Positions 278 through 46,334 of a stretch of 64,000 nucleotides of DNA are shown piece by piece. Under the pieces are notes generated by a model. That model was not told where the DNA came from. It worked only from the letters and a program-made list of their open reading frames with translations, and did not search any database. Where the stretch lies: IMG/VR virus record IMGVR_UViG_3300017987_000001, positions 62,001 to 126,000 of that record, one strand, 5' to 3'. Positions within the stretch are counted from its first letter, which is position 1; each line of letters starts with the position of its first letter. Both the position numbers and the translations under genes were made by a program.

Positions 278-2167
278 TTACGTTTTGACGACGCGTGCTC
301 CGAAGCGCATGATGCCGAAGCCGTCGGACGGGCCGCCAGTGCCATCCCATCCAATTGTGAAGTCCACTGTATCGCCCATCGCCACGCTGAAGAAGTCCGT
401 TTCTGCCGGACCATACTCACCTGCGGCAAGGGTCAACCCCGGCGTCCAGTCGCCACCGCCGCCTTCGATATCCGTGTCCGCAACCGGAAGGGCGGTAGCT
501 GCTGTCGGCTGCGCGTAGCGACGGTACGTCGCTTCCAGCGCGGGGATGGCCCCGGCAGAGCGGCCTACGAACCAGAACCACAGCTGCAGCTCTAGTGGGC
601 TGGACAGACCGAGGCGGGGGATCTCGACCCGCCCACGCATGCTCGAAGGACGCCCTGCCGGGAAATGGAGGTAATAGAACAGATTCGCACTGTCGTATGC
701 CTCAAGGATGTCATTCAGCGCGACGATCGTGATCTGGTATTCTTTCGGATCCCCGGTTGTGTCTTCGAGCTGGACCTGCAGATCTCCATGGTAGAAGCCT
801 TCGTCGTCTACCGACCAATCGGTATCTTCCGTGCCGACGCCGACCACTTCCGCGCCCGTACCGGCCTTCAGCCCGATCACGGCCGGACCGCGCTGGACCT
901 TGTCGGTGCTGAAGCTCTTGACTACGGCGATGCCCGCAACAGGCTCTTCGACCTCCAAGAGGCTGAGGTCGAGGTAGCTGAAGATCCTGCCTGCGCTGGC
1001 CTCATTGCCGTCACAGTCCACGTACCGAATCGGCGTGGTGTCGCTGAGCGGAGACAGCTCGTTGACCACGTTCGGATCGGTCTTGTAGACCATCTTCGAG
1101 TACCACAGAATGAGCCGCTTCTCGTCGAGCCACGTGTCGTCGAGGCCGAGGTACTCAAGCGGCGTGTGACAATGGTACTCCGGCTCCCCGGAAGAGGTCG
1201 AGGGGTCCGGGCCGAACGACTGCGAGGATGAGGACGACTCACACTCGGGGTAGCTCGGCGCCCACGGAGCCGCACCGTAACAGTTCTCCATCCACCACAG
1301 CCCACTGCAGTCGATGATCGCCGTCGGGCGCTCTGTGGCATTGATCGGCAGTCCGTAGCCGTTCTGCTCCAGATAGACGCTGCCACTCGGGTTCGGCGGC
1401 CACACCTTCTGCAGTTCCGGATGCTGCGCGAGGTTGTAGCCGAACTTGGCACCGTCCGGAGCTGCGCCTTGGAACAGCGGGTGATCGGCCGGTAGCCAGC
1501 CCTGCTGGGTCGGGTCCGGGTCGACCACCTGATGAACTTGGCCGTCCCCCCGCACGACGCAGTTCGCCTCGCCTGCGGGCTTGGCGTACAGCTCAAACTT
1601 GTAGTGCACGTGATCTTCGAGCAGGTCACGCGGCGTCGGCATGAAGTGGAACGTGTCGTCGCCACGATTGTAGAGCACGTAGACGCTGATGGCGGGCTTC
1701 TGCAGCGTCAGCTTACCCGGCGTCTGCATCGATAGGAAGTACGGACCTACCTCGTCCGGACCGCCGTTGACGATCGCGTTCGTCAGGTCGAAGTCGCGCA
1801 GCGTACCAGCCGTCAGGATGTGGCCCGCTTCCGTACCAGTCTTCGCGTACACCATACCGACAACGAAGGCGGACGGTGCGAGCATGTACCAGCCCGCCGT
1901 CTGGTTGAACTCGACGGCAGCCAGCGCGCGCTTGTACCCGTTGTAGGTCTCGTCGAAGTAGACGAGATCGCCCGGAGCCGCGTCGGCTTCGATCTTCTGG
2001 TAGTGCAGGAAGAGTGCTTCCCCTGCGGTGATCGAATTCAGCCGCTCATAGAGGTACTGCGTCCGCGCGGTCAACTGGCGCGGCGCGCGGTTCGCGACGG
2101 AGGCTTTGACGTCCTCTCCGTTCACGATGTAGTGGATCAGCTGTTCCCACGGAGTCATTACCGCCAT
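278..2167 (-). CDS. Virion structural protein of the baseplate/fibre-attachment region (629 aa), with poly-Ser tract
   Basis: Long acidic beta-rich ORF with RBS, directly downstream of the baseplate wedge genes; contains CESSSSSQS. Confidence 0.6.
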   Translation of the reverse strand: MAVMTPWEQLIHYIVNGEDVKASVANRAPRQLTARTQYLYERLNSITAGEALFLHYQKIEADAAPGDLVYFDETYNGYKRALAAVEFNQTAGWYMLAPSAFVVGMVYAKTGTEAGHILTAGTLRDFDLTNAIVNGGPDEVGPYFLSMQTPGKLTLQKPAISVYVLYNRGDDTFHFMPTPRDLLEDHVHYKFELYAKPAGEANCVVRGDGQVHQVVDPDPTQQGWLPADHPLFQGAAPDGAKFGYNLAQHPELQKVWPPNPSGSVYLEQNGYGLPINATERPTAIIDCSGLWWMENCYGAAPWAPSYPECESSSSSQSFGPDPSTSSGEPEYHCHTPLEYLGLDDTWLDEKRLILWYSKMVYKTDPNVVNELSPLSDTTPIRYVDCDGNEASAGRIFSYLDLSLLEVEEPVAGIAVVKSFSTDKVQRGPAVIGLKAGTGAEVVGVGTEDTDWSVDDEGFYHGDLQVQLEDTTGDPKEYQITIVALNDILEAYDSANLFYYLHFPAGRPSSMRGRVEIPRLGLSSPLELQLWFWFVGRSAGAIPALEATYRRYAQPTAATALPVADTDIEGGGGDWTPGLTLAAGEYGPAETDFFSVAMGDTVDFTIGWDGTGGPSDGFGIMRFGARVVKT

Positions 2168-2177
2168 GCTGCTCCCC

Positions 2178-2804
2178 TTACCGGAATCGGATCAGATACT
2201 GAGCGCCGATCTGGTATCCGTCTTCCTTCGGCACCGGGTCGAATCCATCATACGACCGGCTGAACAGCAGGTCGCTCGTGTATTGTGCAGGAGTCGGGGT
2301 GGCCGCCAGCGCAACGCCGTAGACCTTGCTGTTCGCGGCGTTGCTGAATGCCTTCCCATGCGTACCCTGCGTGCCAGACGTGATCGCGAAGAAGGTTGCC
2401 TGATTCCCGTCGTACTTGTCCGAGTCCGACGAGGAGAAGCCCGCCGGGATGACAAGCGGAACGCGCACGTAGTCCTTCGTCGCGCTCAGGTTCAGCGTGT
2501 CGAGGTAGTAGCTGATGTCCTCGTCTCGCTGCGGCGACGGGATCGTCGGTGCTCCCGCCGTATTCTCGTACTCGAAGTACATCGCTCCCGCTGCGTAGGT
2601 AACGTCCCCCGCGAGTGCGCGAGCGAGCACGTCTGCCCCCTGATACGGGATGAGGTTCTTCTGCTCGACGAGGTGCTTGATCTCCCCGGTCTGCTCGTGG
2701 AAGCTGAAGATTCTCCACCACGTCTCGACATCCTTGTCGAGGTGGATCAGTTCGATGCGCGCATCGAGCTGGGCCTTGATCACAGGGATCAGCTTGGGGT
2801 TCAT
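2178..2804 (-). CDS. Baseplate wedge/tail-collar-type protein (208 aa)
   Basis: KNLIPYQG..LA N-terminal pattern and LFSR...Y.I.F C-terminus resemble phage collar/wedge proteins; ATGA overlap with the upstream gene. Confidence 0.55.
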   Translation of the reverse strand: MNPKLIPVIKAQLDARIELIHLDKDVETWWRIFSFHEQTGEIKHLVEQKNLIPYQGADVLARALAGDVTYAAGAMYFEYENTAGAPTIPSPQRDEDISYYLDTLNLSATKDYVRVPLVIPAGFSSSDSDKYDGNQATFFAITSGTQGTHGKAFSNAANSKVYGVALAATPTPAQYTSDLLFSRSYDGFDPVPKEDGYQIGAQYLIRFR

Positions 2805-4400: not shown

Positions 4401-6056
4401 TCAGATCTGCTTGGTGGCCATCGGCACTTCGGCAATGCTCACGTCATCCTCGTCCAGATAGAAGCACGTCGTCCTCTGCGAGACGCCCCGCTCCGGCAGG
4501 TCCGGGATCTCCAGCAGGTTAGGATCCCGCAGCTCGATCCGCCCGGTCGGTACGGTATCGGGCGGGTAGATGTAGGCATGCATCTCGATCGGAGTCACGA
4601 CTGCCGACCCGTATGGCTCGACCAACCCCATCGCCGCGTCCACGAGCAGCGCCATGAAGAGCTTGCCGGTGTTGAATCCGATACTGTTTGCCCGGCTTGC
4701 CACGGCCTGCTTCATCGCGGAGATATCGAAGGACGCCGTCGTGGTGCGCCGCTGCACCTGCATGCTGACGGCGGTGAGCGCCGGGACGGGTGCCTTCACG
4801 AGGTAGTCGCCCGTAGGCGGGCGCTTGGAGCGATCGACCGTCAGGTTGTGCACCGCCTGAATATTGATCATCCGCAGTACGTAGATGTCGTACTCGGCTG
4901 TCGCGCCGATCAGCGTCGTAGGGTCGGTGGATGGATCCTCAAACGTGATGACGGCTGTCTGGTAGCGCGTGTACGCCGCCTCTTGGATGTTCTCGATGGT
5001 CTGAACGAACTCGTCCTGATCGGGGGTCAAGTCGTAGCCCCGTACCTCCGTCTGAATCTCCAGACTTCCATCGAACGCCGTCTCGCCCTTCTGCACCACG
5101 GCACTGATGAGGTAGAAGCCCGGAGCGTCGTTGCGGCCGATCGTGGCTGTCCACAGGTTACTCCCAAGATATGAACAGCTCTTCGTCACCTTGAGTTCGT
5201 CGGGGACGGGGGCCGTTCGGACGTAGAGATCCGCCTTACCACCGGTGCTCAGCTCGAAGATGTTATGCCGATCGCGCAGCATCTCGGAGTCACCGAACCC
5301 GACCTGCGAGACCGCCTGAATGTCATCCACCTCATCACGAATCAACGCTTCAATCTGCGCACGCCCGGAGAAGACCTTCGGAGCGATCCCCGACTGCGCG
5401 CGCTGTACCAGCTCCGCATTCGTCTCGGCGCTGGTGCCTCCCTCGAAGTCCTGCGCGGCAGTGATGTCGATCACACCCGCAATCGTCGGTGATACCGTGA
5501 AGCGCGAGTTGCGCTTCATCTGATACGTGCTGCCAGTCTCCTCGGCGGTAACGGGCACCGTGAAGACATAGGAGCCATCGGTACGCTCTTCAATCAGCCG
5601 CTCGCCCGTACCAAGCACGGCGTCCGCCGTCGTGACTCCCACATACGCCTGAGAGACGACGAAGTTCAATCCGTTCGCCGTGAAGACCGAGTTCGCCGGG
5701 ACGGCCGTCGTGGCCAGCTCGGAGATAATGATCGCGACCAGCCCGGTAGCCTTGCTGCCTTCGAAGCGTGTAATCCCGTAGTTCGCGAAGACGGCGTCCG
5801 TCATGTCCTCGTCGGCGAGGTCGGGATTCTCAGCAATCACCAGCGGGGAGAAGGACTGCTTCAGCGTATCAATGTCCGCCCGGTTGATAGCGTGAACGAT
5901 CGCGGCAGGCCGAATCACGTTCTCGTAGATCACACGGTTCTCCGTGAGATCCATGGACGGGAACTCTTCCTTCAGCAATTGACGAAGATACTCTTCGGCT
6001 TGGGTGATCGCCGACTCGGGAATATCATCGAAGGATAGGGTGCTCTCGCTGACCAT
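4401..6056 (-). CDS. Baseplate J-like wedge protein (T4 gp6/P2 gpJ family, 551 aa)
   Basis: ITRFEGSKATG, VPVTAEETGSTY and FEGGTSAETNAELVQRA are characteristic Baseplate_J motifs. Confidence 0.85.
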   Translation of the reverse strand: MVSESTLSFDDIPESAITQAEEYLRQLLKEEFPSMDLTENRVIYENVIRPAAIVHAINRADIDTLKQSFSPLVIAENPDLADEDMTDAVFANYGITRFEGSKATGLVAIIISELATTAVPANSVFTANGLNFVVSQAYVGVTTADAVLGTGERLIEERTDGSYVFTVPVTAEETGSTYQMKRNSRFTVSPTIAGVIDITAAQDFEGGTSAETNAELVQRAQSGIAPKVFSGRAQIEALIRDEVDDIQAVSQVGFGDSEMLRDRHNIFELSTGGKADLYVRTAPVPDELKVTKSCSYLGSNLWTATIGRNDAPGFYLISAVVQKGETAFDGSLEIQTEVRGYDLTPDQDEFVQTIENIQEAAYTRYQTAVITFEDPSTDPTTLIGATAEYDIYVLRMINIQAVHNLTVDRSKRPPTGDYLVKAPVPALTAVSMQVQRRTTTASFDISAMKQAVASRANSIGFNTGKLFMALLVDAAMGLVEPYGSAVVTPIEMHAYIYPPDTVPTGRIELRDPNLLEIPDLPERGVSQRTTCFYLDEDDVSIAEVPMATKQI

Positions 6057-7919: not shown

Positions 7920-8702
7920 TCAGCTGCCAAGGTCGCGTCCTTCCTCAAGCTTCATAGCGATCTTCGCCGCGCGCTGCGATACCGCGCTCGGCGTGATCCC
8001 CAGCCGTCGTGCGATCTCGTTGGTGGAGATTACCTGCTTGCCATACAGGCCGGTCTTCCACTCAAGGATCTTCTTGTCGATCGGATCGAGGTCGTGATGC
8101 ACGTACTCCAGCCAGATATCGTCGGCAGTTATCTCCTCCGTCCCCGGCAGCACCACGCCTGACTCAGGCGTATGAGTCTGCCCGGTAGCGACAATGCCTT
8201 TGGAGAACATGCGAAGGCGTGAGATTCGCTTGCCCGACAGTCCCGTCAGCTCCGACAGCTCTGAGTCCGACGGATCTCGGTTGTTTGTCTCGCGAAATTC
8301 ACGTTCGGCCAGATCGAGATGATACTTATCAGCCTGAATTCGCTCGGGGATCTTGACCGGAGTGGTACGCTTCATGAACTCGCGGCGAAGCGGCTGCAAC
8401 TGAATCAGTAGGTGTGTCTGTAGCTTTGCTCCCCGCTCGGGGTCGTACTTCTTGAATGCATCAATCGCTAATCGCTTCGCCCGGCCAGTCAGCGCTTTCT
8501 CGCCACCGGCGTAGCTCGTCAACGCCTTGGAGATTACCGGGTTAGCTGCCCTAAGTAGCTTGTTCAGCGTCGTCGGTGTGGGACTGCGGCGCCACTGATC
8601 ATAAGAAGCATCTAGGTTGCTCGGCTCTTGCCGAACAACCTTGTCGAATCCGAAGTTCTCGACCGCGAACTTCTTTGGTGGCTGCTTCTTAGGCTTTGGC
8701 AT
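7920..8702 (-). CDS. Phage RNA polymerase sigma factor, sigma-70 family (FliA/SigF-like, 260 aa)
   Basis: Region 2 AFKKYDPERGAKLQTHL, VKIPER, region 3 RDPSDSELSELTGLS, region 4 HTH STNEIARRLGITPSAVSQR. Confidence 0.9.
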   Translation of the reverse strand: MPKPKKQPPKKFAVENFGFDKVVRQEPSNLDASYDQWRRSPTPTTLNKLLRAANPVISKALTSYAGGEKALTGRAKRLAIDAFKKYDPERGAKLQTHLLIQLQPLRREFMKRTTPVKIPERIQADKYHLDLAEREFRETNNRDPSDSELSELTGLSGKRISRLRMFSKGIVATGQTHTPESGVVLPGTEEITADDIWLEYVHHDLDPIDKKILEWKTGLYGKQVISTNEIARRLGITPSAVSQRAAKIAMKLEEGRDLGS

Positions 8703-8761: not shown

Positions 8762-10396
8762 TCATTCTCCCGTCAGCTTCGCGCCATCGTAGCGCGCGTC
8801 GTAGATCGGGTGCTTCTCTTCTACCATGAGACCAAGATAGCCGTCATGCTCCTGCGCAGACAGCACGTTGCTCAACTGGAATGACGTGCTGGCATTGCCG
8901 ATACCGCCCGAACCGCCGCTCATCGCGAGGCGTACGCGGCGAACGAAGCCATAGATATATCGTGGCTCCTGTGAGTCGCTGAACTTGCCGCCGCCAACCA
9001 CGCCTACCGCGATCGTGGATCCGGGAGCTACGTCGAGGCGGAAGCGTCCCGTGATACCGCCAATGCGACTGCTGCACATCTCGTTCAGCAGTACGAGCTT
9101 TGCGTAGGAATCGCCCATCTTTCCCTTGAGAAACTGGTTGTAGATCTTCGCATAGTCTTCCTCGTCGGTGGGCGTGTACTGAAACGCATCAGGATTCGCC
9201 GCATCCGGAATCCCGAACTTGTCCTTGCCAAGCGCTACCTTTGCGAGCAGACCTATCGACGGCTCGGTTGCCAGCCAGTCCGGCGCATTCACGCAAATTG
9301 CAATACCTTCATACGGCAAATCACTGATGTCGTCAGCCGATGCTTGTCCGATGACTGCGCTATATCGTGGCGCTGATGCATAAGGTGATACATGCCCGAG
9401 ATTGTTTGCGAGTACGACAACCTTCGTAACGAGGTTCGGCGTGTAGAACGAGATGTTGACATCGTGGTACTCGTCCGGCTCGACGATAATGTACGCGTCA
9501 CCACCAAGCGCACTGAAGGCGGGCGCACATGTTGCTGTATCGATGAGCGGAACGATGTGGAACGCGTATGACCGTGCAGCCGAAACAAGGGCGTGCCACA
9601 ACGTCGATGCGCGCCAATTGTAAAACAGTCGCTTAGCCAACGTCGTTGTCAGCCATTCACCGACAATCTTCCTCGGAAGATCTTCGATGATGTTCTTCAT
9701 AGAAAGCGTCAGCTCAGCTTTACCGAACTGCTCGGAATCATCCATACGCCCAAGCGCGTCAAGCGCTGACTCGTTCTCGACAGCCCCCCACACTTCCTTC
9801 GTGCTTGCAATCGCCGTGAAGAGGGGTTTGATGTAGCGAAGCCAGAGGTCGTCTACCGAGTTCTCCGGGTTGCCCGACACCGCAGCACTGAGATTGAAGA
9901 GCGCCGTCGGATTCGGATTCTCTTCATCCATGCCGACAGTGGCCGCTTCGAAGAAGCCGCCCGGCCCCTTAACCGCCGTGCGCGTTGTTCGCGTACTGGT
10001 ACCAACCAGACCAACAAGCCAGCCTGCCGCCGTAGCCCCGATTGCGACACTCCCACCGCCAAGTTGCCGCTGGGAGGTGTATGTGACACCCTGATAGTAC
10101 CCATCGAAGATAAGCGTATCTTCATCGTACGGGAAACCGGGTTCGTCCTGTGGGCTATCCTCTTCAGTCTCACCCTTTACGTAGATCTTGATTGGCGTGT
10201 AGGGCGCAGCATTAAGCAACGCATCCACCGATTCCGCCTCTTTGCCCGTACGCCCATCGCGGCCCACAACCGGGTTAAACCGCGCCGTCGGTATCTCATC
10301 AAGTGCGTACTCGATCTCGAAGTTCGAGATCTCGATGCGCGTACCGTCAAGATCCGCGTAGGCACTCCACTTGACGTGGTAGTAGTTCTCAGGCAT
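8762..10396 (-). CDS. Baseplate hub/tail protein (gpD/gp27-like, 544 aa)
   Basis: N-terminal ISNFEIEYALDEIPTA..LIFDGY and C-terminal RLDVAPGSTI..GFVRRV match hub architecture; synteny agrees. Confidence 0.6.
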   Translation of the reverse strand: MPENYYHVKWSAYADLDGTRIEISNFEIEYALDEIPTARFNPVVGRDGRTGKEAESVDALLNAAPYTPIKIYVKGETEEDSPQDEPGFPYDEDTLIFDGYYQGVTYTSQRQLGGGSVAIGATAAGWLVGLVGTSTRTTRTAVKGPGGFFEAATVGMDEENPNPTALFNLSAAVSGNPENSVDDLWLRYIKPLFTAIASTKEVWGAVENESALDALGRMDDSEQFGKAELTLSMKNIIEDLPRKIVGEWLTTTLAKRLFYNWRASTLWHALVSAARSYAFHIVPLIDTATCAPAFSALGGDAYIIVEPDEYHDVNISFYTPNLVTKVVVLANNLGHVSPYASAPRYSAVIGQASADDISDLPYEGIAICVNAPDWLATEPSIGLLAKVALGKDKFGIPDAANPDAFQYTPTDEEDYAKIYNQFLKGKMGDSYAKLVLLNEMCSSRIGGITGRFRLDVAPGSTIAVGVVGGGKFSDSQEPRYIYGFVRRVRLAMSGGSGGIGNASTSFQLSNVLSAQEHDGYLGLMVEEKHPIYDARYDGAKLTGE

Positions 10397-12251
10397 TCGT
10401 TCCCAGCCGATGCTCGTTGGTCAGGTGGATCAGCGCAAGCAGCACGCCGCTCAGCTTGTACGGCAGGTGTGGATGCTGCTCCCACAGTTCACGGAACAAG
10501 TCATACGGTGCGCGACGCGGGAAGAGTGTCTCGTACGCCTGCGCACCGATCTTCGAAATCGCAGCCGCCCGCGCGACCATGCTCATGTCTGTGGTCGGCG
10601 GGGCGATGTACTCGATCGTCCACGCGGTCTCGCCGAGCGACGTATCCACTCGTGCCTTGTAGTTGTTGTACGGAACGAGCGGAACGTAGCTCGTGATGCC
10701 GTCGACCACGTCAACGTTGAATGACTCCTGATGCGGTGTCGTCAGGCACTTCACGGTGATCGTTGCGCCAGCGAGTTCGACATCCCACGTCGCGCGGAGC
10801 CGCCCGTCAGCGCCGCCAAGCCCCGGGTCACCCGTGAACTCAAGTCCAGCCGCAGGCTGCACGAGTGGACCGTAGCCGTACCCGACAAGCGAGCGATCGC
10901 CGAGATACGTGATGCGACTATCGAGATCGGTGATGTACTCACCGTACTCCGTGGAGTGCAGCAGCCGCATGTACTGCCACACGCTGTAGTTCATCCCCGC
11001 CGTGTCTGGGGTGGTTCCGAACAGGGCACGGCGTACCGTAAGCAGCCCGCTCGGCAGATCTACCGGCCGGTAGTACGGAGGTACGTACTCTTCGCCGTAG
11101 AAGTCAGCGCCCGGACGATCAGCACCAGAAGCGTTCAGCAGGAGCGTGCGCCCGAGGTTCGGCGTCTTCCCCGAGACGGTCGGCTGAACCGTGACGCTCG
11201 GGGTGATTGGCGTATCGGACGAGGACGATGACGGCGTCGGTCCCGGGCCGGGACCGGGGCCAGTCGTTCCGTACTCGTCGGCACCGACGCTGTACAGCGC
11301 ATCGCTGCCCGGTCGATCATTGCCACGAATGCCCTTCGTGTTGGACGGAATCTGAACGGCGGAGCCGCTGCCTTCGAGTACGCCGCCCGATGCAACCATG
11401 AGGAAGTCAGGATCGCTGGAGACAAGCGACTTGAACTCGGCCGGAAGGATCGTCGTGAAGTTACTGCTTCCGCCACCGCCCCATATGCCGTTCCCGGCGC
11501 TGGCATCAGACGACGCGTTGTTGTACCCCGCGTACGGGTCCAGATTGAAGCCGGAGAAGTCACTGGTGAGACTCCCCACAGATACACAATTGCGCACGAT
11601 ACCCGCGCCGCCGAAGGCAAACCCATCTGCGACATTCCAAATACCGTAGTTGGCGCAGTAGTATGCCGTAAGGTTCTCGAAGCGTCCCGATCCCGAGCCG
11701 AAGTAGCCCGGAGCGATTCCGATCCCCACGTCGTTCCAGTGGTACGCCTTGAGGTTCCACGCATCGATGTCGCCGCCGAGCGACTGCAGGCTGATACCGA
11801 TAACACCAAACAACTCGACGTCGAGGAGACTACCAATTGCGATGAGATCGTGCGCTACAATATCCACAGATCCCGAATAGTTGATGAGCTGAAACGCCGT
11901 CTCAGCATCCGTCAAGCCCGTCTCGTCGACCTGTAGATTCTTCACTTCGAACGTACCGGTACCGTTCACTTCCATGCGAACGATAGGCGTACCGGGGTTG
12001 GCAAGCACCTGAATGAGATTGCCCACACCGGCAACCCCGTAGTGTGGCGTATCGGAATCGAATGTGAGCGCGTAGCCGTTGAGATCGATGCCCGCAGCAC
12101 CACCCGCGTAGGGCGTGCCCGGCTCACTCGTATTTCCCGTCTGCATGACATAGAGGTTGCCGGTAAGATCGTCGAGGTCAGCAATCAACGCCGACCACGT
12201 CGTGAACGTCTTGCCGGGTCCAACCTCTACGTAACCTGACGTAGTAGCCAT
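10389..12251 (-). CDS. Baseplate-associated protein with N-terminal beta-helix domain, Pro/Ser linker and C-terminal anchor domain (620 aa)
   Basis: Pectin-lyase-like repeats ending in YSVGADEY, then a GPGPGPTPSSSSS linker and a distinct C-terminal domain. Confidence 0.55.
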   Translation of the reverse strand: MATTSGYVEVGPGKTFTTWSALIADLDDLTGNLYVMQTGNTSEPGTPYAGGAAGIDLNGYALTFDSDTPHYGVAGVGNLIQVLANPGTPIVRMEVNGTGTFEVKNLQVDETGLTDAETAFQLINYSGSVDIVAHDLIAIGSLLDVELFGVIGISLQSLGGDIDAWNLKAYHWNDVGIGIAPGYFGSGSGRFENLTAYYCANYGIWNVADGFAFGGAGIVRNCVSVGSLTSDFSGFNLDPYAGYNNASSDASAGNGIWGGGGSSNFTTILPAEFKSLVSSDPDFLMVASGGVLEGSGSAVQIPSNTKGIRGNDRPGSDALYSVGADEYGTTGPGPGPGPTPSSSSSDTPITPSVTVQPTVSGKTPNLGRTLLLNASGADRPGADFYGEEYVPPYYRPVDLPSGLLTVRRALFGTTPDTAGMNYSVWQYMRLLHSTEYGEYITDLDSRITYLGDRSLVGYGYGPLVQPAAGLEFTGDPGLGGADGRLRATWDVELAGATITVKCLTTPHQESFNVDVVDGITSYVPLVPYNNYKARVDTSLGETAWTIEYIAPPTTDMSMVARAAAISKIGAQAYETLFPRRAPYDLFRELWEQHPHLPYKLSGVLLALIHLTNEHRLGTNA

Positions 12252-27223: not shown

Positions 27224-27245
27224 ACGTAGCGCTCCGTCATCGCCA

Positions 27246-30309: not shown

Positions 30310-30350
30310 TCAAACCTCCTGCGTCGTAATCATAACCCGATCCGTTGACG

Positions 30351-32429: not shown

Positions 32430-32492
32430 GGGCCTTCTCCTCGATAATACCCTGCGCAGTCCAAATCCACCAGCCCGCAACCAATCTTCTCA

Positions 32493-32789: not shown

Positions 32790-32803
32790 GTGCTCCTCCA
32801 TTA

Positions 32804-33016: not shown

Positions 33017-33086
33017 GGTACTAATCCTTTCTCAGCAGCTATCTACTTATTGACCCCAAATCCTCAACGTACTTCGTGCCGCGCTC

Positions 33087-34718: not shown

Positions 34719-35518
34719 ACCAGACCCCACTTCCACGCAAGATATCCTTCGACCAGCAGACGCTGCTCAGTGGTGATGTCGTGAACGATTACGACCTCGC
34801 CGATCTTACCCTCCATCAGACGATCCAGTGCGCTGTCCGATGAGCCATGACCTCCGACGCAGAAGTATTTAGCGGCAGTGTTGAGCGCGTTGCCCGGTGC
34901 TGTTCTGAGCCACGGGTTGTACGCACCGTCCTTGCCAGCGTAGAGTTCAAGTTTCGTTGTCCGGTTGATTTCGCCACCGTACAGGAACGGCACACCGTTG
35001 GTCTGCGTTGCGGAATATGCATCCTGAAGACCTGTAGTCGTATAGGAACGGTCTTCCGCGATGGCGCGAGTTTGTGCAGCAGCAAAGTCATAATGGCATT
35101 CAAGGTTGTTGCCACCAGCACCGTTGTACGGTGTACCGGATACAAGCCCGCCCGATTGCTGGCTGAAATACGCGATGAAGTTCAGATTCGCAGCAACGTC
35201 AGGCTCCACAACGGCAATCACGAATGTTCTCGTTGCAGTCGGGAACAGGTTGGCAACGTCGGCGTTGTCTCGGAACAGCCTATCCCGATCGAACGTGATG
35301 ACGTTGTATCCGTTGATGGTGTCCGAACCCGTGACCGGCTGCTCAGACGCATCGCTGCGCGAAACGTCAAACCCGTTGCCAGACTTGTCGTCCCACTGAC
35401 TGACCGCGCCGCCCGATTCGGTGATCGTATCCTCGTCGGCAGCATCGAACCACGCCGCCAGAGAAGACCCTAGCTGCTCAGGAGTCCATCCATGCTGGAA
35501 GAGGCTGAGTAGACTCAC
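34715..35518 (-). CDS. Single-domain LamG/ConA-like lectin protein (267 aa)
   Basis: Third copy of the same domain. Confidence 0.75.
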   Translation of the reverse strand: MSLLSLFQHGWTPEQLGSSLAAWFDAADEDTITESGGAVSQWDDKSGNGFDVSRSDASEQPVTGSDTINGYNVITFDRDRLFRDNADVANLFPTATRTFVIAVVEPDVAANLNFIAYFSQQSGGLVSGTPYNGAGGNNLECHYDFAAAQTRAIAEDRSYTTTGLQDAYSATQTNGVPFLYGGEINRTTKLELYAGKDGAYNPWLRTAPGNALNTAAKYFCVGGHGSSDSALDRLMEGKIGEVVIVHDITTEQRLLVEGYLAWKWGLV

Positions 35519-35527
35519 AGCGATTCC

Positions 35528-35770
35528 CTATGGTTCTACCTCGGCCTGAGCGTAGTTCGATGAGTCGTAGTCCTCTACGGTCATCCCAGTGTAATCCTGA
35601 TCTGGGCATACCGTGTACGCCCACTTCCCGTCGAGTCGTTGCCGTGGCGTTGCCCACCGCGTCGTCTGAGCCTGATACTCCGCGCCGGGATGCGTTGCGA
35701 AGTGCGCTTGCAGGTCGAGTGCCTGCTGTGCTTCGGCTTCGGCTTCGGTGTCAAAGACTACTTCCTGCAT
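35528..35770 (-). CDS. Small fibre-associated protein (80 aa)
   Basis: AGGAG RBS; TTRWATP..DGKW motif; follows the tail fibre gene. Confidence 0.6.
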   Translation of the reverse strand: MQEVVFDTEAEAEAQQALDLQAHFATHPGAEYQAQTTRWATPRQRLDGKWAYTVCPDQDYTGMTVEDYDSSNYAQAEVEP

Positions 35771-35778
35771 GATGTCTC

Positions 35779-38481
35779 CTACCCGTAGTTCTGCGTGAAG
35801 TTCGCGAGGTAGTTCGTGCCGTCGTAGTACAGCACCAGCATGTCAATCGCGTCATTCACCTCAGTGATGTTGAGCGTCGAAGGAGCAGACCCTCCCGGCA
35901 CGAGAACCGTAGAAGGCAACACCACGTCGCGGAACGTACCGCCCGAGTCCTGAATGAACTTGATCATGTACGTTTCGCCTGCAACAGGATTATTGAGCGT
36001 CAGGGTAACGTCACCCGTTGCGCTTTCAAGGTCTACTTCGACAGACAACCCGTCATCCCAGTCTATCGTCTGGGTCGTTCCGGTCGGCGTTAACGTCGAT
36101 TGCTTCAGGGCGCGCATCTGAAGAGCGCCACCGCCTGCGCCTGTGAGGACCGTCCCTTCAGCACCGTCGGTTGCCAGATCCTCGACGGTGATCTCGTCGC
36201 TGCCGCCGTCGCTGTGATCGGAAGCGTGCGCGAAATCACTGATCGTGCTCTTGGTCTGCGTTCCGGTGTGGTTCGCTCGCGCCCTGTCGGTCGCGTGGTA
36301 GTGGAGTGTCGAATCGCCACCGTCTGTTAGATCAGTGTGCCGTGCTGCAGTGAGATGGTAGTACTCATCTGTCGTGCCGCCCTGCAGGCCGCCCAGATCG
36401 TTGTGAACGGAGACAGGTGTGTACCCGACATCCGTGTCGTACAGGATATCGACGGCGACGAAGTTGGTCGTACCCTCCTGCACTATGATTCGCGCCGCTA
36501 GCACGCTCATGTAGCTGAACAGGTCGGGCAGGTCGGTCGGGAAAGTCTCAGAGCGAGCCTCAGCCTCAGAGTTGTATTCGTTGCGCCCATACACGACATG
36601 GAGTGTGTCGGCAGAATCCGGGGTGATGAACACCCAGCGGATCGCGAACTTGTTGTTGCCGAGAGACGCAGGCGTCCCGGAGCCGTCGTCGTAGAGCGTG
36701 TTGTCGACCTGACGAGGAGCCGCTGCTGTCGAGCGCGTGAAGCCTCCAACGCCGTCTCTGTACCACAGGTCGAATGTATCTCCGACGCTCGTGTCGAACG
36801 CAGAGGAGATCCACTGCTCCAGCGCGTTCCATCCGATGCCCGCAGTCACGTCGAGGTAGCGCGTACCGGTCTCGCTCACGATCGCGCCGGACGTGCGTAC
36901 AACGCCGTCAACGGACCCGAGCCGCTGGATCAGCGTGGCGACCATGTTGGCGATATCCTGACCAACGTCGTTGACCCAGATCTTCGTGCCCTTGCGGTAG
37001 GCAGTCGTGAGGAGGATCTGCGTCGTGCCGTCGATAGGCGCAGGCGGGACCGACGAACCGATGATCGGAGTGCCACTGTTGTAGTCGACGTAGATGAAGT
37101 TGAGCGCGTTGTCGGAGAGCGGACCAACGCTCGCGTCAGCCGTCCAGTCGAAGAACAGGTTCTCGCCCGTGGGCGAGTTCGTTGACTTGACGATACCAGT
37201 TCCGGCTGTAACGGCCACCGTGCCGTCACCGTTATCGGTGACCGCGCCACCAGTGATGCGCCCTGCGGACTGTGTTATGTCGTACCAGTCCTTCAGGGTG
37301 TCGTAGGTCGGGGTGCCGAGGATCGCTGCTGTCACCGCGCCCATGGGCAGTGTGCCCGGCCCTGCAAAGCCCCCACGACCGATGAACTCACCGCGCAGGT
37401 CCACATAGTCGTCGCCGCTGTCAGTGCTCCTGATGCGACTCTTCACCGTGTTGCCGTAGCCGTTTGAGGTCTGGTAGATGATCGTCCCGACAAATCGCCA
37501 CTCGGGCGACGGCAGTCCGTTGGTGATCAGGCTGTTGATTTCGGTGACCGCACCGTCACGGGCGTTAATCAGAGTGCTATAGTCGCTCTGACCTTGGAAC
37601 ACAACGAACGGTCTGTCGGTATCGTTGGTGACGGCGACGTGCGCGAGAACGAATTGGTTATTGGTCACCTCTGTCTGCTGCCAGTTGCCACCGGTCAGTT
37701 CGTTCCATGCAGCGCGGCCTGTTCCCGTGGTCAGCACGCCGAAACTCGCAGTCTCGTCTACGCGCCAGATGTCGGATGCGTCCGCTCCCGAGCGATAGTA
37801 CACCGGAATGGTCGCCGTGCTGCCTCTCGCACTGTGTGAGAACTCAGCGTCCTCGTCATACGCTACCGTGGCGTCGTTTCCGAACTGCGCGTGCGCGTCG
37901 AGGTCGCCAGTATCGTCAACAACGATGCTCGACAAACCGCCACCGGACTCCAGTGCGAACCCGATGGTGTCATGCAGGTATCCATGCGTCCCACCTGACA
38001 TGAGCACCGAGTGGAAGTGCTCGCGGTTGAACATGATCTGCTTGGAGTTGGTGTTGTCCCAGTAGACTACCGCGAGAATGCAGTACTTGGTTATCAGGTC
38101 GGTAGTGAACGTGGTTGTCTCTTGGATCGTGCCGTTCTCATCGTAGTAGATGAAGTGGGTGCCTTCGGTGGCGGCAATCTGCTTGGTATCGCCCGTCGAG
38201 GTGTAGCGTTTCCCGTCCGAGTAGAACGTGAAGCTCGCGCCGGTCGGCTGTATCGAAAACGTCCGGTCAGGCGTCGAGTCGGTCCAGCTTGCCGTTGTAG
38301 CGGTCGAGGGATCAACGATACCGTTGAGTTGTGTGGCCGACGCGCCAGACGGCTGCATCACGAGGCCGTTCGCGCCGTCGCTGGTCGGCACCTCGCCAAT
38401 GGCACCGTCAGTGTCGAGGTCTTCTACGTAGAGACCCTCTTGTACCCAGCGACCGCCACCTTGGTCATCGAACTTCGGCAT
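35779..38481 (-). CDS. Tail fibre protein (900 aa)
   Basis: Thr/Gly-rich beta domains, His-containing knuckle motifs (HNDLGGLQGG..YYHL, RANHTGTQ), C-terminal TIDWDDG..LYYDGTNY head domain. Confidence 0.75.
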   Translation of the reverse strand: MPKFDDQGGGRWVQEGLYVEDLDTDGAIGEVPTSDGANGLVMQPSGASATQLNGIVDPSTATTASWTDSTPDRTFSIQPTGASFTFYSDGKRYTSTGDTKQIAATEGTHFIYYDENGTIQETTTFTTDLITKYCILAVVYWDNTNSKQIMFNREHFHSVLMSGGTHGYLHDTIGFALESGGGLSSIVVDDTGDLDAHAQFGNDATVAYDEDAEFSHSARGSTATIPVYYRSGADASDIWRVDETASFGVLTTGTGRAAWNELTGGNWQQTEVTNNQFVLAHVAVTNDTDRPFVVFQGQSDYSTLINARDGAVTEINSLITNGLPSPEWRFVGTIIYQTSNGYGNTVKSRIRSTDSGDDYVDLRGEFIGRGGFAGPGTLPMGAVTAAILGTPTYDTLKDWYDITQSAGRITGGAVTDNGDGTVAVTAGTGIVKSTNSPTGENLFFDWTADASVGPLSDNALNFIYVDYNSGTPIIGSSVPPAPIDGTTQILLTTAYRKGTKIWVNDVGQDIANMVATLIQRLGSVDGVVRTSGAIVSETGTRYLDVTAGIGWNALEQWISSAFDTSVGDTFDLWYRDGVGGFTRSTAAAPRQVDNTLYDDGSGTPASLGNNKFAIRWVFITPDSADTLHVVYGRNEYNSEAEARSETFPTDLPDLFSYMSVLAARIIVQEGTTNFVAVDILYDTDVGYTPVSVHNDLGGLQGGTTDEYYHLTAARHTDLTDGGDSTLHYHATDRARANHTGTQTKSTISDFAHASDHSDGGSDEITVEDLATDGAEGTVLTGAGGGALQMRALKQSTLTPTGTTQTIDWDDGLSVEVDLESATGDVTLTLNNPVAGETYMIKFIQDSGGTFRDVVLPSTVLVPGGSAPSTLNITEVNDAIDMLVLYYDGTNYLANFTQNYG

Positions 38482-38489
38482 CTCTACCC

Positions 38490-41400
38490 CTAAACCTTGT
38501 TCCCGCTCGTCGTAACGTTGGTGCCGTTCTGGTTGAAGTTCGCCGCCGTGTTGCCCCTGAGATGGTTCACGCCAAACAGGTTGTTGTCACAGTCGGCGTC
38601 TTCCTGAATGCCGTTGCCCGTGTTGCCGTAGCACCGGTTTCCACAGACCATTGTTTCATCAGTCTCGTCCAAGTGGATGCCGTCATCCGAGCAATCGCGA
38701 ACGTGGTTGTTATTGCACTGCGAGTAGTCAACACCATTAAGGAATATACCGTCCCCGTTCACGGTGACGATCTTGTTGTCGTTGATCGTCATGTACGAAC
38801 CCGTGCTCACGCTGATGCCGTAGTTGCCGCTCGTACCGATGCTATAAAGGAAGTTGCCATTGACGACCGTATCGGTTCCGGCCACCACAATGCCGTTCAA
38901 ACTTGTCGTATCAATGTGATTGTTCACGATCTGGCAACGAGCACCGGCAGACGCGAAGTCGATGCCAATACCGGCATCGTTGATCTGGTTCAATGCCACG
39001 AGCAGATCCGTAGCCGCAGCCGTGCACTTGATCCCGTCGTTGCCGGGATCATTGACTATGTTACCCACGATGACCGACCCAGAGCATGCCACGTTGGTCA
39101 GATCAATGCCATGCGTCGCCGGGGCATCCACGACGTTGCCGATGATCATGCACCGAACCTGCGACCTGATTGCCGGTTCAGCGTTCACACTCGTCACGTA
39201 GTTGCACGCGACCAGACCGGTTGCGCTGCGAATCTCGATGCCGAGACCGGACGAGTTGACGCTGTTGCCGACAACAACCCAGTTGCTCCCGCCGTCGCGG
39301 TCGATGATGCCGCGATTAGGAACGCTGCCCGACTGCGTTATAACGTTCCCAATGACGGTCACGTCGTTCCCGTTGTCGATGTCGATCACCTGATCACTCA
39401 CCTCGTAGAACAGATTCCCTACGATTGCGAGTCCCGTGACACCGGTGAAGTCCGAATACACGCCGTCGGCCTGACCCTGATAGCATACGTTCCCGGCAAC
39501 CACAGACCGGGACGCACCACTCAAGTCAAAGTGAGGACCAACGGGACTGATCGACATGTTGCCGACAATGACAACACCGTCGCCCTTGGCATCGATGCTG
39601 AAGCCACCGACCAAGTAGATGTAGTTCCCCACAAGCAGGATGTCGGTATCGGTGGAGTCACAATCGAATCCCGAGTTCACCACGTCATCGATGAAGTTGC
39701 CGATGGCTGCTGATTTTGGGCCATGAATCTCAAATGCGACTTGAGAATTGGTCACGTAGTTGCCGATGAAGACCGTGAAGTCACCATCGCTCGTCCAGCC
39801 ATTCGATGCCGACGTATTGCACATGTTGCCGATGACCAGAGTATGTTCCGCAGCCGAGCTGATGTACCCGAACCTCGTCCCCGAGTTGAGGAGGATGTTT
39901 CCGAGAACGAGCACATTGTCGGCGGTCACCTCGACACAGTTCGACCCCGGAGCGACAGCCGTGGTGTTCCGAACATGGTTGCCGATGATCGTCGTGTTGT
40001 TCGATGCGGTACGAATACCATGACCATCGATTGTGTTCAGGTAGTTCCCGAGGACCGCACAGTCTGTGGCCGCCGCTATATCGATGCCGTTGGCACCACC
40101 GTTGTTGATGTAGTTCCCGATGATGAGACACGCGGCTGCATTGATATCGATTGAGATACCGGTCGCCCCGGTGATCGTGTTGCCAAGGATGGTATGCTCA
40201 CCCGAGCCGCTGACCAAAACACCCACGTCAGGGTTCTGGATGCTGTTGCCCACAACGACGCAGTACTGCGAATCCACGATCTCAATTCCATCGCCGGTCG
40301 GATTCATGATCGTGTTGCAGGAGATAACGGTGCGGTCGCCGTTGTTCTGGTAGATGCCGTCGCCGTTGTTTGAGTAGATGAGGTTGCCGACGATGACGCC
40401 GTTGTCCACCGCAGAGTCGATGCCGATGCCGCCGTCATCGTTCGACATGTTCCCGATGGCGATACTGCGGTCGCCGTTGATGTCGTACCCGTATCCAGAA
40501 CCCCTGACCGAGTAGTTGCCGATCAGGGAAGACTCCGAACCATCGACCTTGAAGCCTCCGGTATCGCAAGAGAATGCGAAGTTGCCGACCAAGAGATGCT
40601 CGACGCCCCTGTCGAGGTTGATACCAATGTCGGCATCGTACACGTTATTGCCGATGTAGACGTGACGGTCTGCGGCGTTCGCGTTCTTGATGCCGTCGAA
40701 ACCCGCTGCCGGATCATACACGTAGTTGCCGATGAGCATGATCTCGCGAGAGATGCTGATCAACAGGCCGATGTCGGCGGGAGTATTGATGTAGTTGCCG
40801 ACGACCAGTGACTCCTGTACGTCGAGCAGATGCATCCCGTAGCTACCGGGATTATCAACGACGTTCATGCCGATGATACAACCGTGGTTGTCGGTGGTGC
40901 CGTCGTCGCCGCCTTCGATGCCGATGCCAGTAATACCGCTGATACGGTTACAGAGGAACATGTTCTGCGGACCGTTGAAGTCAATACCTTTGGCGGTTGC
41001 ACTGTTGCCATTGATCACGTTCGCAACGACCAGACAGTCCTGCGCGCCCGTCGCCATCTCAATGCCGTCGCCGGTGGTCGTTCCGACGTTATAGATAAAG
41101 TTTGCAACAACTATGTTCTCGTCGGCGTTTGCGCTAAGGTCGATACCGTTGCCCGTCGTGTCGCGCACATAGTTTCCAACGAACACGTTCCTGACGTTGT
41201 TGCTATCGAGGCCCGTCGAGCCGCCCTCGACCCAGTTGCCGACGACGAGGTTGTCATCATTGATGCACTGAATCGCCGCGCTCGTTGAATCGATCAAGAC
41301 GTTGCCGACCGCTATAGCGTCGGTCTGAAGGTAGATGCCGTTGCCGCCAGCAGAGTACACGAGGTTTCCGACCGCCGTGCACCGAAGATTCTGAAGGATG

Positions 41401-42524
41401 ATGCCCTGCGAACCGGGGTTGTAGATGATGTTTCCAACGAACAGACCGTCGCCGCCAATCCCGGCGATACCATCAGTCGTGGCGTCAGCAATCATATTGC
41501 CAACGCACATGTTGTCGCTAGATGCGCCAGCGATATTGATACCGTCGTCTCCGGCGTTGTAAATTACATTACCGACCATGATGTTTCGACCGTTACCGGG
41601 GAGTGAGATGCCGTGACTTGATGTACTCGCGATATGGTTGCCGGTGATGTTGCAGCGAGTCGCGCCATTCGCAAACAGCACACCGACGGTACAATTATCG
41701 ATATGGTTGCCAACGACCACAACGTCGTCTGAGTCATCGAGCGTGACTCCCGCCGCAGTCTGATCGCGGATCGTGTTCCCGACGATAACGGTCTGGGAAC
41801 ATGCCTCGACAGTGATCGCGCCGCTCGCGCCCTGCGACGACATCTCGTTCGCGCAGATGATTCCCTCGTCCGCGCGCTTGACATAGATACCGCCAGCCGA
41901 ATCCTCCAGCTGGTTGCCCATGACAGTACACTGCCAGATGCTCTGCGACTCGACCGCGAGGTGGATGAGATACCCCGCCGCATCGGAGTCCTTCCTGATC
42001 TTGTTGTTGAGGACGCGAATGCGATTCGCATAGCCGCCTGCACCCGTCACGTCCATCTTCACGAAGTTCGCGCCGTCGAAACTGCGGTCGCATTCGCAGT
42101 TGCTCACAGTGAGGTCGAGGCGACCGCCGGTCGAGGGGAAGTCGAGGAACGGCTCCGCTTCGGTAGCGAGTGCGCGGTCGATATAGATCGCGTCGATCCA
42201 TACACCGTTCGACGGCGTCGCCGCCGTGTCCTGCACGAAGGGCTGGTCGACCGTACTTGTCACCTTCACGTCACGGATCACGAAACGATGCGATGCGTTC
42301 AAGATGATCGCCGGACCGCCAGAGTACGTGACGTTGATTTCACAGGTGCGCCCGGCGCCCATGATCGTGATGTCGGTCTTGCTGGAGAGATCGATCTGCG
42401 CGTCAGCGACGTGCTGGCCTTCTTCGAGCAGCACGAACGTACCGCTGTCGATATTGTTCAGAATGTCCGGCAGGTCATCGGCCCGCAGGACAAAGAGGAA
42501 CTTGTTCTCGTAGCCACTCGGCAC
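38490..42524 (-). CDS. Very long right-handed parallel beta-helix (pectin-lyase-like) spike protein (1344 aa)
   Basis: GTG start 42524 after GGGG RBS; dozens of ~22-aa (V/I)xGNxI.....GI repeats. Confidence 0.85.
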   Translation of the reverse strand: MPSGYENKFLFVLRADDLPDILNNIDSGTFVLLEEGQHVADAQIDLSSKTDITIMGAGRTCEINVTYSGGPAIILNASHRFVIRDVKVTSTVDQPFVQDTAATPSNGVWIDAIYIDRALATEAEPFLDFPSTGGRLDLTVSNCECDRSFDGANFVKMDVTGAGGYANRIRVLNNKIRKDSDAAGYLIHLAVESQSIWQCTVMGNQLEDSAGGIYVKRADEGIICANEMSSQGASGAITVEACSQTVIVGNTIRDQTAAGVTLDDSDDVVVVGNHIDNCTVGVLFANGATRCNITGNHIASTSSHGISLPGNGRNIMVGNVIYNAGDDGINIAGASSDNMCVGNMIADATTDGIAGIGGDGLFVGNIIYNPGSQGIILQNLRCTAVGNLVYSAGGNGIYLQTDAIAVGNVLIDSTSAAIQCINDDNLVVGNWVEGGSTGLDSNNVRNVFVGNYVRDTTGNGIDLSANADENIVVANFIYNVGTTTGDGIEMATGAQDCLVVANVINGNSATAKGIDFNGPQNMFLCNRISGITGIGIEGGDDGTTDNHGCIIGMNVVDNPGSYGMHLLDVQESLVVGNYINTPADIGLLISISREIMLIGNYVYDPAAGFDGIKNANAADRHVYIGNNVYDADIGINLDRGVEHLLVGNFAFSCDTGGFKVDGSESSLIGNYSVRGSGYGYDINGDRSIAIGNMSNDDGGIGIDSAVDNGVIVGNLIYSNNGDGIYQNNGDRTVISCNTIMNPTGDGIEIVDSQYCVVVGNSIQNPDVGVLVSGSGEHTILGNTITGATGISIDINAAACLIIGNYINNGGANGIDIAAATDCAVLGNYLNTIDGHGIRTASNNTTIIGNHVRNTTAVAPGSNCVEVTADNVLVLGNILLNSGTRFGYISSAAEHTLVIGNMCNTSASNGWTSDGDFTVFIGNYVTNSQVAFEIHGPKSAAIGNFIDDVVNSGFDCDSTDTDILLVGNYIYLVGGFSIDAKGDGVVIVGNMSISPVGPHFDLSGASRSVVAGNVCYQGQADGVYSDFTGVTGLAIVGNLFYEVSDQVIDIDNGNDVTVIGNVITQSGSVPNRGIIDRDGGSNWVVVGNSVNSSGLGIEIRSATGLVACNYVTSVNAEPAIRSQVRCMIIGNVVDAPATHGIDLTNVACSGSVIVGNIVNDPGNDGIKCTAAATDLLVALNQINDAGIGIDFASAGARCQIVNNHIDTTSLNGIVVAGTDTVVNGNFLYSIGTSGNYGISVSTGSYMTINDNKIVTVNGDGIFLNGVDYSQCNNNHVRDCSDDGIHLDETDETMVCGNRCYGNTGNGIQEDADCDNNLFGVNHLRGNTAANFNQNGTNVTTSGNKV

Positions 42525-42537
42525 GGTTATCCCCCTA

Positions 42538-45534
<2,997 letters not shown>

Positions 45535-45654: not shown

Positions 45655-45900
45655 TCAAGCGCTACTGGACGAGCAGCACGACTCATCGACCGGTACGTAG
45701 CAGATCTCACCGGCGTCGCACGCCGCATCGAGAGCGGCAAGCTCCCGACGACGGTTGTAACGATTCCGGCCGCCTGCCAGCGCGGTGCGAAGATCCCCGT
45801 CATAGGTAACTTCCTCGTTGCTCGCGAGGCTCTTACCATGGTCGGGGAGGAAGCCGAAGAACTTCGTGACTCCCGATGTGTTGATGATCGTCGTCTTCAC
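45655..45900 (-). CDS. Small virion protein ending in CCSSSSA (81 aa)
   Basis: AAGGAGG RBS with GTG start. Confidence 0.7.
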   Translation of the reverse strand: MKTTIINTSGVTKFFGFLPDHGKSLASNEEVTYDGDLRTALAGGRNRYNRRRELAALDAACDAGEICYVPVDESCCSSSSA

Positions 45901-45911
45901 GATCCCCTCCT

Positions 45912-46334
45912 TTACGCCGAATGCGATTCCTTGATGATGACGTCGCCATTTCCGGTCTTAGCGCTCACCACCACCTTGTATTTGCCCGCAGGCAGCGGCT
46001 GGATAACCCACAGCAAGCCCTTCACGTCAACTGCGTGCTCGCCATAGTATACCCAGTTCCCGCCAGCGCCGGAAGAAGAACTTCCTTCCGTAGTTTCGTC
46101 AGTTGCCTCTGCGAACAGCTGAAGGGTCGCCGCCGTCGGGCCATCCAGCCCGGCGTAGATGAAGAGGGACGCATTCGCACCCGTCGTCACCGGGTTCGGA
46201 GTGGGATCGAGTGTGATATCGATCTCTTCCGAAACGGAATCTACGCCGCCCGCGTCGACCGCATCAACGGTACGATAAGGCGTGCGAGGGGTGCGATAGG
46301 TTCCCTCGACTGATTTACGACCAACTCCAGCCAT
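45912..46334 (-). CDS. Small beta-sandwich virion (decoration-like) protein (140 aa)
   Basis: GGAGG RBS; downstream of the capsid gene; internal GSSSSG. Confidence 0.6.
   Translation of the reverse strand: MAGVGRKSVEGTYRTPRTPYRTVDAVDAGGVDSVSEEIDITLDPTPNPVTTGANASLFIYAGLDGPTAATLQLFAEATDETTEGSSSSGAGGNWVYYGEHAVDVKGLLWVIQPLPAGKYKVVVSAKTGNGDVIIKESHSA

Follow-up and report, generated by a model that had tools for sequence, protein, structure and literature searches.

To our knowledge, a few actinobacteriophages are so far the only phages whose particles have been shown to be glycosylated, and in mycobacteriophages the transferase genes lie outside the structural operon. Serine-rich repeat glycoproteins of Gram-positive bacteria are glycosylated by GtfA/GtfB, glycosyltransferases (GTs) of the GT4 family. 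According to PMC12363180, which cites Freeman 2023, the virions of mycobacteriophages Che8, Corndog and Myrna are glycosylated by phage-encoded transferases; Maf members of the DUF115 group O-glycosylate exposed Ser/Thr residues of flagellin (PMC11339370). Here, we analysed runs of consecutive serines (poly-Ser; S5 denotes a run of five) in tail-side proteins encoded by a stretch of 64,000 nt, hereafter the window, which corresponds to positions 62,001-126,000 of the 207,857-bp IMG/VR record IMGVR_UViG_3300017987_000001 and also encodes glycosyltransferases and related enzymes. An initial annotation had proposed that these runs are tags on which the enzymes of the window write a glycan coat. 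We found that poly-Ser sites are a clade-wide core trait of ~200-kb metagenomic phages, ancient and under selection, and that they are older and more widespread than the enzyme cassette.

As in the mycobacteriophages, the window encodes glycosyltransferases (GT4, GT32-like and DUF115-like), and O-linked decoration of the virion is a candidate function. However, the mycobacteriophage substrates are capsid and tail-tube proteins, whereas here the runs lie on sheath, neck, baseplate-region and fibre proteins; moreover, modification is here only proposed, and enzymes and runs do not co-vary among relatives. The resemblance to Maf flagellin islands lies in a DUF115/sialyltransferase-fold protein clustered with transferases and methyltransferases, and in putative exposed Ser acceptors on the subunits of a helical polymer that self-assembles in the cytoplasm. 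Unlike in those islands, family PF01973 is reached only via homologues of the protein, no nonulosonic-acid synthesis genes were seen in the window, the runs are homopolymeric rather than scattered Ser/Thr residues, and the polymer is a phage tail rather than a flagellum. The combination of a GT4 enzyme with candidate Ser-rich acceptors that would be modified in the cytoplasm also recalls the serine-rich repeat systems, which the six S6-x9 repeats of a protein from one relative (L044) resemble in miniature, but there are no long repeat domains, and neither a GtfB-like partner nor a second GT4-like chaperone was found in the window. Finally, the polyserine linkers of carbohydrate-active enzymes from Saccharophagus degradans, Teredinibacter turnerae and Xanthomonas albilineans share with our runs the homopolymeric Ser and the mixed codons, and one fibre run, and probably those of an 88-aa and a 620-aa protein, likewise lie between domains. 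In contrast to those linkers of secreted enzymes, the runs described here are 4-13 residues long and occur on virion proteins assembled in the cytoplasm; 14 of the 68 runs collected from 13 related loci are terminal, and the sheath run is a loop insertion.

All the Ser runs listed by the initial annotation are present in true minus-strand coding frames. With residues shuffled within proteins as the reference, the 20,608 aa analysed contain 11 runs of S≥4 against 0.41 expected (27-fold) and six of S≥5 against 0.04 (p≤0.001); the enrichment was specific to Ser among residues, Gly being mildly raised by a collagen-like repeat. Runs of S≥3 number 19, every one of them within tail-side genes (278-46334; 14,857 aa), whereas the 8,979 aa encoded by head-module and RNA polymerase genes contain none (p about 1e-4), and an RNA polymerase fragment of a relative (2,080 aa) contained no Ser runs. 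TCN and AGY codons are mixed in 50 of the 68 runs, none of the 68 uses a single codon, and codon choice within them equals general Ser usage. Mixed codons, already pointed out for the window by the initial annotation and here extended to the 68 runs of 13 loci, indicate selection for Ser at the protein level and not DNA slippage, and we consider it shown that the runs are kept through selection on the protein. A six-frame reading alone would be no evidence, because the non-coding frames are also rich in S≥4 runs, each holding about nine. Eleven of the 68 runs are C-terminal tails and three are N-terminal, and these cannot be linkers. In the flanks of the runs, Pro is raised 1.6-fold, and Lys and Arg are reduced to about 0.3-fold. 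An association with neighbouring Cys (sheath RGIC, PECE-S5, CC-S4) was considered and discarded: in the window, a Cys lies no more than 10 residues from about three of the 11 runs, where about 1.6 would be expected, and the 2.5-fold enrichment across loci derives from loci that are not phylogenetically independent.

The comparison set comprised 80 IMG/VR loci (79 relatives and that of the window itself), several assembly loci and seven loci from metagenome-assembled genomes (MAGs), the last of which yielded no further poly-Ser-rich lineage. In an alignment of 118 full-length sheaths, the sheath loop, with motif RG[IVE]C-x-S(n)-G-x-PPDL, carries S≥4 (up to 11) in 88 of the 99 sheaths that are at least 50% identical and is deleted in more distant ones, and 83 of the 118 retain a second site, FDNxG-S(3-5). 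Wherever the sheath is at least 50% identical, the locus holds 3-6 runs per ~7,000 aa (0.1-0.5 expected), and about 60 more distant loci hold 0-1 run. Orthologous runs range in length from 4 to 13 residues within the clade. In the sheath tree, the trait occupies one supported clade (SH-aLRT, the Shimodaira-Hasegawa-like approximate likelihood ratio test, 97) plus a separate long-branch pair, L036/L044, with 11 runs apiece, and requires at least three changes; from this tree, the L036/L044 lineage appears to have gained poly-Ser independently. Poly-Ser kept at fixed positions of phage virion proteins was not described in any paper that our literature searches returned. In the L036/L044 pair, small proteins encoded between capsid and neck genes (L044 5126-5635; L036 5901-6302) consist almost wholly of S4-S6 blocks, and one L044 protein contains six tandem S6-NAGTAAAEQ units.

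The runs recur at corresponding places in orthologues of the carrier proteins (Table 1). The 623-aa orthologue of the 629-aa protein in an L005-type phage carries S13, likewise at position 311, orthologues of the 296-aa protein carry S5-S10 at the equivalent C-terminal place, and those of the 140-aa protein S4-S8 at position ~97. By alignment, the run of the 286-aa protein falls in a hypervariable loop after DL[ST]xY, where orthologues have S4-S10 and outgroup orthologues a hypervariable Ser/Asp/Glu-rich loop. Orthologues of the 81-aa protein end in CCSSSSA, CCSSSSSP or SSSSSSA, and in the poly-Ser clade this tail takes the place of a ~40-aa C-terminal domain of outgroups; orthologues occur in about 40 loci, and in some outgroup copies the C-terminus is a collagen-like GATGATG repeat. 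For the 620-aa protein, partial homologues were found in 46 related loci. In the 998-aa fibre, S6-L-S4 joins duplicated N-terminal domains, a domain of ~150 aa being tandemly duplicated there. The same fibre contains, at about 43025-44355, an array of about 45 10-aa repeats, GPTGDPS[VTE]IT, with a 30-nt period, which is not of the pure G-X-Y collagen type. A neighbouring 1378-aa protein (38490-42626), which is probably a depolymerase-type tail spike, has seven right-handed beta-helix (NosD-like) stretches and no Ser runs. The runs occupy loops and terminal segments of virion proteins on the tail side, in line with the expectation of the initial annotation. The further description of the carriers as exterior virion proteins holds for sheath and fibre; in contrast, the 286-aa protein has only leads to an adaptor/connector, and the others are placed by gene order alone.

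The sheath, of 938 aa rather than the 971 first annotated, was identified by Pfam and PHROG sheath matches and by a fold like those of the phage 812, AFP and diffocin sheaths. In its AlphaFold model (mean predicted local distance difference test score, pLDDT, 83.7), the S5 loop (residues 414-418) is coil with pLDDT <50, between a helix (404-407) and a strand (425-437), and the second Ser site is placed within a coil spanning residues 271-290. About 350-470 model columns align with the minimal sheaths of phage 812, AFP and diffocin, and this limited alignment places the runs in an extra, beta-rich N-terminal half. The loop is missing in outgroups and disordered in the model, suggesting that folding does not need it. 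Of the placement expected on the predicted sheath, namely exposed loops, the model supports disordered loops, and, going by the general architecture of sheaths, the extra domains would face outward.

Each enzyme class named by the initial annotation (GT32, GT4, DUF115-like, methyltransferase and sulfotransferase-like) is present in the window. The 250-aa DUF115/MptE-like protein has no direct Pfam match, but 11 of its 27 homologues match PF01973 (best 8e-8) and three of the 27 match CST-I; it also has Atlas matches to PF01973 clusters, and the best PDB match of its AF2 model (pLDDT 93) is CstII (1e-4, template modelling score, TM, 0.45). The same domain is fused to GT2 in L084 and L086. Since Maf proteins glycosylate flagellin, a protein substrate is plausible for this enzyme. 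The 185-aa protein matches the methyltransferase half of a GT4-methyltransferase fusion (phmmer, 2e-17), and the 193-aa protein matches sulfotransferase clusters with an Atlas score of 0.98 and TM of 0.79-0.86. One relative, with a sheath 63% identical, carries homologues of the GT4 protein on its contig (62% and 45% identity); the nearest solved relatives of the window GT4 are sugar transferases of the BshA/TarM type, and it shows no specific similarity to GtfA. For the GT32-like protein, we found no homologue in the related loci or in the IMG/VR contigs searched. Among solved structures, it matches only short stretches of Legionella SetA and of clostridial TcdA glucosyltransferase domains (E 4e-5 to 4e-4), which reflects the common DXD sugar-binding region and is not a sign of a toxin.

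From Maf-type flagellin islands and mycobacteriophage virion glycosylation, we drew a model. The runs are short, disordered, uncharged surface loops or tails at fixed sites of tail-side virion proteins: the outer domains of the sheath, the neck/adaptor, the baseplate-region protein, the fibres and the small proteins encoded after the capsid gene. They would present clustered hydroxyls for O-linked glycosylation across the surface of the assembled tail. In the window phage, the candidate writers would be the adjacent cassette of DUF115/sialyltransferase-like, GT4, methyltransferase-like and sulfotransferase-like proteins; in relatives, other enzymes, phage-encoded elsewhere or from the host, would serve, or the runs might function unmodified too.

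The distribution of enzymes and runs was compared within 10 kb of the sheath gene, extended to ~62 kb in one relative and ~30 kb in another. Enzyme islands occupy the equivalent hot spot beside the neck gene in four of the five closest relatives (L084, L088, L089 and the P0030 contig). That of L084 contains two GT4 genes, a DUF115-GT2 fusion, two methyltransferases and a radical SAM enzyme, that of L088 methyltransferases, a methyltransferase-GT2 fusion and a TylF-type methyltransferase, and that of L089 two GT4 genes, a DUF115-like gene and homologues of the 88-aa and 338-aa proteins.

Much of the comparison, nevertheless, weighs against glycosylated runs, and especially against the window enzymes as their writers. 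Island C and the enzyme genes match none of the 79 related loci (tblastn). Eight poly-Ser-rich loci (L087, L003, L005, L020, L004, L036, L044 and L039) have no transferase detected within 10 kb of the sheath, a negative that for L039 rests solely on phmmer seeds; in six of them (L003, L005, L020, L004, L036 and L044), the 46 genes without a window homologue gave no transferase or methyltransferase Pfam match. L087, with a sheath 65% identical, S10 in the sheath loop and LamG-domain genes at the hot spot, lacks any detected transferase between -20 kb and +10 kb relative to the sheath, and this island-free locus has more and longer runs than the window. In the L005-type phage, no transferase was found in ~62 kb, from the giant RNA polymerase gene to past the 623-aa orthologue, and it still has eight runs, including S13 in the baseplate-region protein. 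Conversely, L012, L016 and L017, without poly-Ser, carry GT4, a GT4-methyltransferase fusion and a GT2/HtrL protein at the hot spot. The resulting association (3/8 versus 3/44; Fisher p=0.075) comes from loci that are not phylogenetically independent; transferases in poly-Ser-poor loci were sought by phmmer seeds only, so their count there may be an underestimate. Clade contigs of at least 140 kb were absent from the GT4 and DUF115-like homologue lists, an indirect and sensitivity-limited result, and a GT4 profile scan of IMG/VR returned four loci, none in the clade, with a sensitivity limited enough to miss known GT4 loci. On the protein side, the major head protein and the 151-aa tube candidate have no run of S≥3, the L089 homologue of the 88-aa protein has the Pro-rich linker PPPAPPVPPTPP in place of S9, and the 60 window genes scanned contained no Pfam family for synthesis or activation of nonulosonic acids (Pse/Leg/Neu/Kdo). 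With eight tagged loci lacking a detected transferase and three untagged loci having one, the co-occurrence proposed by the initial annotation was not observed; provisionally, these eight loci and the ~62 kb of the L005-type phage indicate that the runs persist without GTs, an outcome named in advance as adverse to the idea. The enzymes are window-specific and the runs clade-wide, and the proposal that the window enzymes write on the poly-Ser tags is not supported by the comparative data.

Comparison of all window proteins with the related loci (tblastn) revealed a collinear core and three window-specific islands. In relatives, the 286-aa gene adjoins the 81-aa/140-aa orthologues, with at most a few small open reading frames between them, at the place occupied in the window by island C. 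Within this island, the methyltransferase-like, DUF115-like and GT4 genes are bracketed by two copies of a 71-nt direct repeat that are 92% identical, with the first 42 nt identical, and assembler unitigs break at both copies. The flanking repeats and the unitig breaks make this cassette look inserted and suggest that it is recent or excisable. Enzyme islands are, overall, accessory cargo at a recombination hot spot, occurring with or without the runs. Directly downstream of the sheath, a gene for a PEGA-domain protein occurs in the window (20459-21250, island B) and in L089 (12985-13755), and nowhere else.

Ranking close behind O-glycosylation, though somewhat doubtful in our view, is that the runs act unmodified as hydrophilic loops, spacers or 'bristles', poly-Ser being the filler of this lineage (flexible, uncharged and non-sticky), with the islands serving otherwise. 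The survival of runs without nearby transferases fits such a role, as do the Pro-rich linker that L089 has where the 88-aa protein carries S9, the position of S6-L-S4 between duplicated fibre domains, the GP/TP-rich segment around the 620-aa run and the hypervariable Ser/Asp/Glu-rich loop of outgroup 286-aa proteins, and polyserine linkers are documented for enzymes of Saccharophagus, Teredinibacter and Xanthomonas albilineans. However, numerous runs form tails at protein ends or insertions in loops that join nothing, sheaths sharing only ~50% identity keep near-pure Ser at a place where a generic flexible loop should drift to Gly, Thr, Asn or Ala, a second lineage appears to have acquired the trait at similar kinds of site, and short unmodified Ser patches have no known benefit on virions. 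Neutral origin, by slippage or compositional bias in tolerant loops, would account for run lengths of 4-13 between orthologues and for the Ser runs common in non-coding frames of this GC-rich DNA, but was already disfavoured and is hardly credible given that TCN and AGY codons are mixed in 50 of 68 runs and none is single-codon, that no other residue is comparably enriched, that, in the same genomes, runs are missing from the head module and the RNA polymerase genes, and that 88 of 99 sheath homologues retain theirs. We also regard as very improbable, although a shade less so, another O-linked modification (phosphorylation or acylation) or ion binding: Ser-specific conservation and Lys/Arg-poor flanks would fit any hydroxyl-directed chemistry, but the window and ~62 kb of the L005-type relative yielded neither a kinase nor an acyltransferase domain, and literature searches found no precedent.

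A different question is whether the islands concern the runs at all. They could be swappable host-interaction cargo modifying host polysaccharide, the fibres alone or another non-virion target, as could be expected from the grouping in island C of enzymes with the 900-aa, 1378-aa beta-helix and 998-aa fibre genes, the LamG-domain proteins at the hot spot of L087, the transferase islands that poly-Ser-free lineages also have there, the 71-nt repeat around the cassette and the BshA/TarM-type relatives of the GT4 protein, which are not protein O-transferases. We hold this to be rather unlikely, since the cassette lies on the same strand within late structural genes, adjoining the neck genes, protein O-glycosylation is an established activity of DUF115/Maf-type enzymes (PMC11339370), and the S9-bearing 88-aa protein is itself encoded within the island. 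O-glycosylation is favoured because of the Ser-specific selection, the tails and loops that link nothing, the apparent second gain and the Maf-like cassette beside neck genes; we tentatively consider it the likeliest single mechanism for the runs, albeit at less than even odds, and infer both the modification and the pairing of enzymes with runs. Unlikely, in comparison, is a dedicated acceptor code, in which poly-Ser on about ten tail-side proteins would be written with differing sugar coats by horizontally swapped glyco-cassettes (Maf-like, GT4, GT2, methyltransferase, radical SAM and sulfotransferase); such a code would amount to a programmable tail glycocalyx for camouflage or adhesion in sediments.

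The window, with 60% GC and 63 genes, all on the minus strand, is the late module of a very divergent myovirus and contains no tRNA genes. Most structural proteins, including those of 629, 620, 296, 286, 88, 81 and 140 aa, were unmatched in Pfam and PHROGs. Sheath homologues are abundant in metagenomes (>500, at 45-87% identity, many from contigs of ~200 kb), and the best phage relatives in GenBank are only ~28% identical. Four runs from sediment and seawater contain the window genotype at 100% identity; when IMG/VR was scanned for exact peptides of the sheath, GT4 and GT32-like proteins, the source contig alone was recovered. Host assignment from MAG bins was abandoned, as the labels were discordant (Nanopelagicales, Planctomycetota, Gemmataceae and Alphaproteobacteria). 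Directly past the window end lie multisubunit RNA polymerase fragments (L101 5958-7820). In this family, the RNA polymerase subunits are split or giant (L101 5958-7820; relative L106 1-6243), reminiscent of phiKZ-like jumbo phages, and one subunit of the L005-type phage carries an intein. In the closest island-free relative, of L087 type, the head side of the late module contains a gene of the xylanase family Glyco_hydro_10 (L100 985-2292).

Table 1. Features of the window discussed in the text, in window coordinates (nt); Sn, run of n serines.
Feature	Position	Strand	Remarks
629-aa protein downstream of Baseplate_J	278-2167	-	S5 at position 311, nt 1223-1237
Baseplate_J protein	4401-6056	-	Library matches
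Sigma-70-like protein	7920-8702	-	Library matches; gene within tail module
620-aa protein	10389-12251	-	S5, nt 11217-11231, within GPGPGPGPTP-SSSSS-DTPITP
Island A			GT32-like gene and 409-aa gene
GT32-like DXD glycosyltransferase (island A)	12253-12897	-	Pfam Gly_transf_sug, 5.7e-14
Tail tube candidate, 151 aa	18610-19065	-	
Island B	19234-21250		
Tail sheath, 938 aa	21363-24179	-	S5, nt 22923-22937; second conserved site SSS, nt 23352-23360
296-aa conserved protein upstream of sheath	25392-26282	-	SSS-L-SS-I-SS near C-terminus, nt 25449-25475
286-aa putative head-tail adaptor	26282-27142	-	S4, nt 26975-26986; adaptor/connector leads
71-nt direct repeat, copy 1	27182-27252		Holds out-of-frame remnant of sulfotransferase-like 3' codons
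Island C, 18.3 kb	27246-45534	-	Enzymes, 88-aa, 900-aa, 1378-aa beta-helix and 998-aa fibre genes
Methyltransferase-like protein, 185 aa	27246-27803	-	Pfam Methyltransf_23, 0.006, below cut-off
DUF115/MptE-like, sialyltransferase-fold protein, 250 aa	27790-28542	-	Transitive homology and fold
GT4 glycosyltransferase, 354 aa	28542-29606	-	Pfam Glycos_transf_1, 9e-17
71-nt direct repeat, copy 2	29699-29769		Holds last 14 codons of sulfotransferase-like gene
Sulfotransferase-like protein, 193 aa	29728-30309	-	Pfam Sulfotransfer_3, 0.004, below cut-off
88-aa protein, inside enzyme island	31358-31624	-	S9, nt 31433-31459
998-aa fibre	42538-45534	-	PHROG tail-fibre matches; window-specific; S4 45517-45528 (N-terminus), S6 45052-45069, S4 45037-45048, S6 42544-42561 (S6-A C-terminal tail)
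81-aa conserved protein	45655-45900	-	C-terminus CCSSSSA, run nt 45661-45672
140-aa protein	45912-46334	-	S4, nt 46071-46082
Major head protein (capsid)	46756-47703	-	
Prohead-protease-like protein	50118-51638	-	

The locus also carries a caution, in that a transferase island adjoining Ser-rich structural genes is no evidence of joint function. If the runs are unmodified, strictly selected homopolymeric Ser on virion surfaces, apparently arisen more than once, still needs explaining. If, on the other hand, they are acceptor sites, large environmental myoviruses would also coat their tails, and the runs would provide a sequence signature for such phages in metagenomes, as well as a short, portable tag for glyco-engineering.

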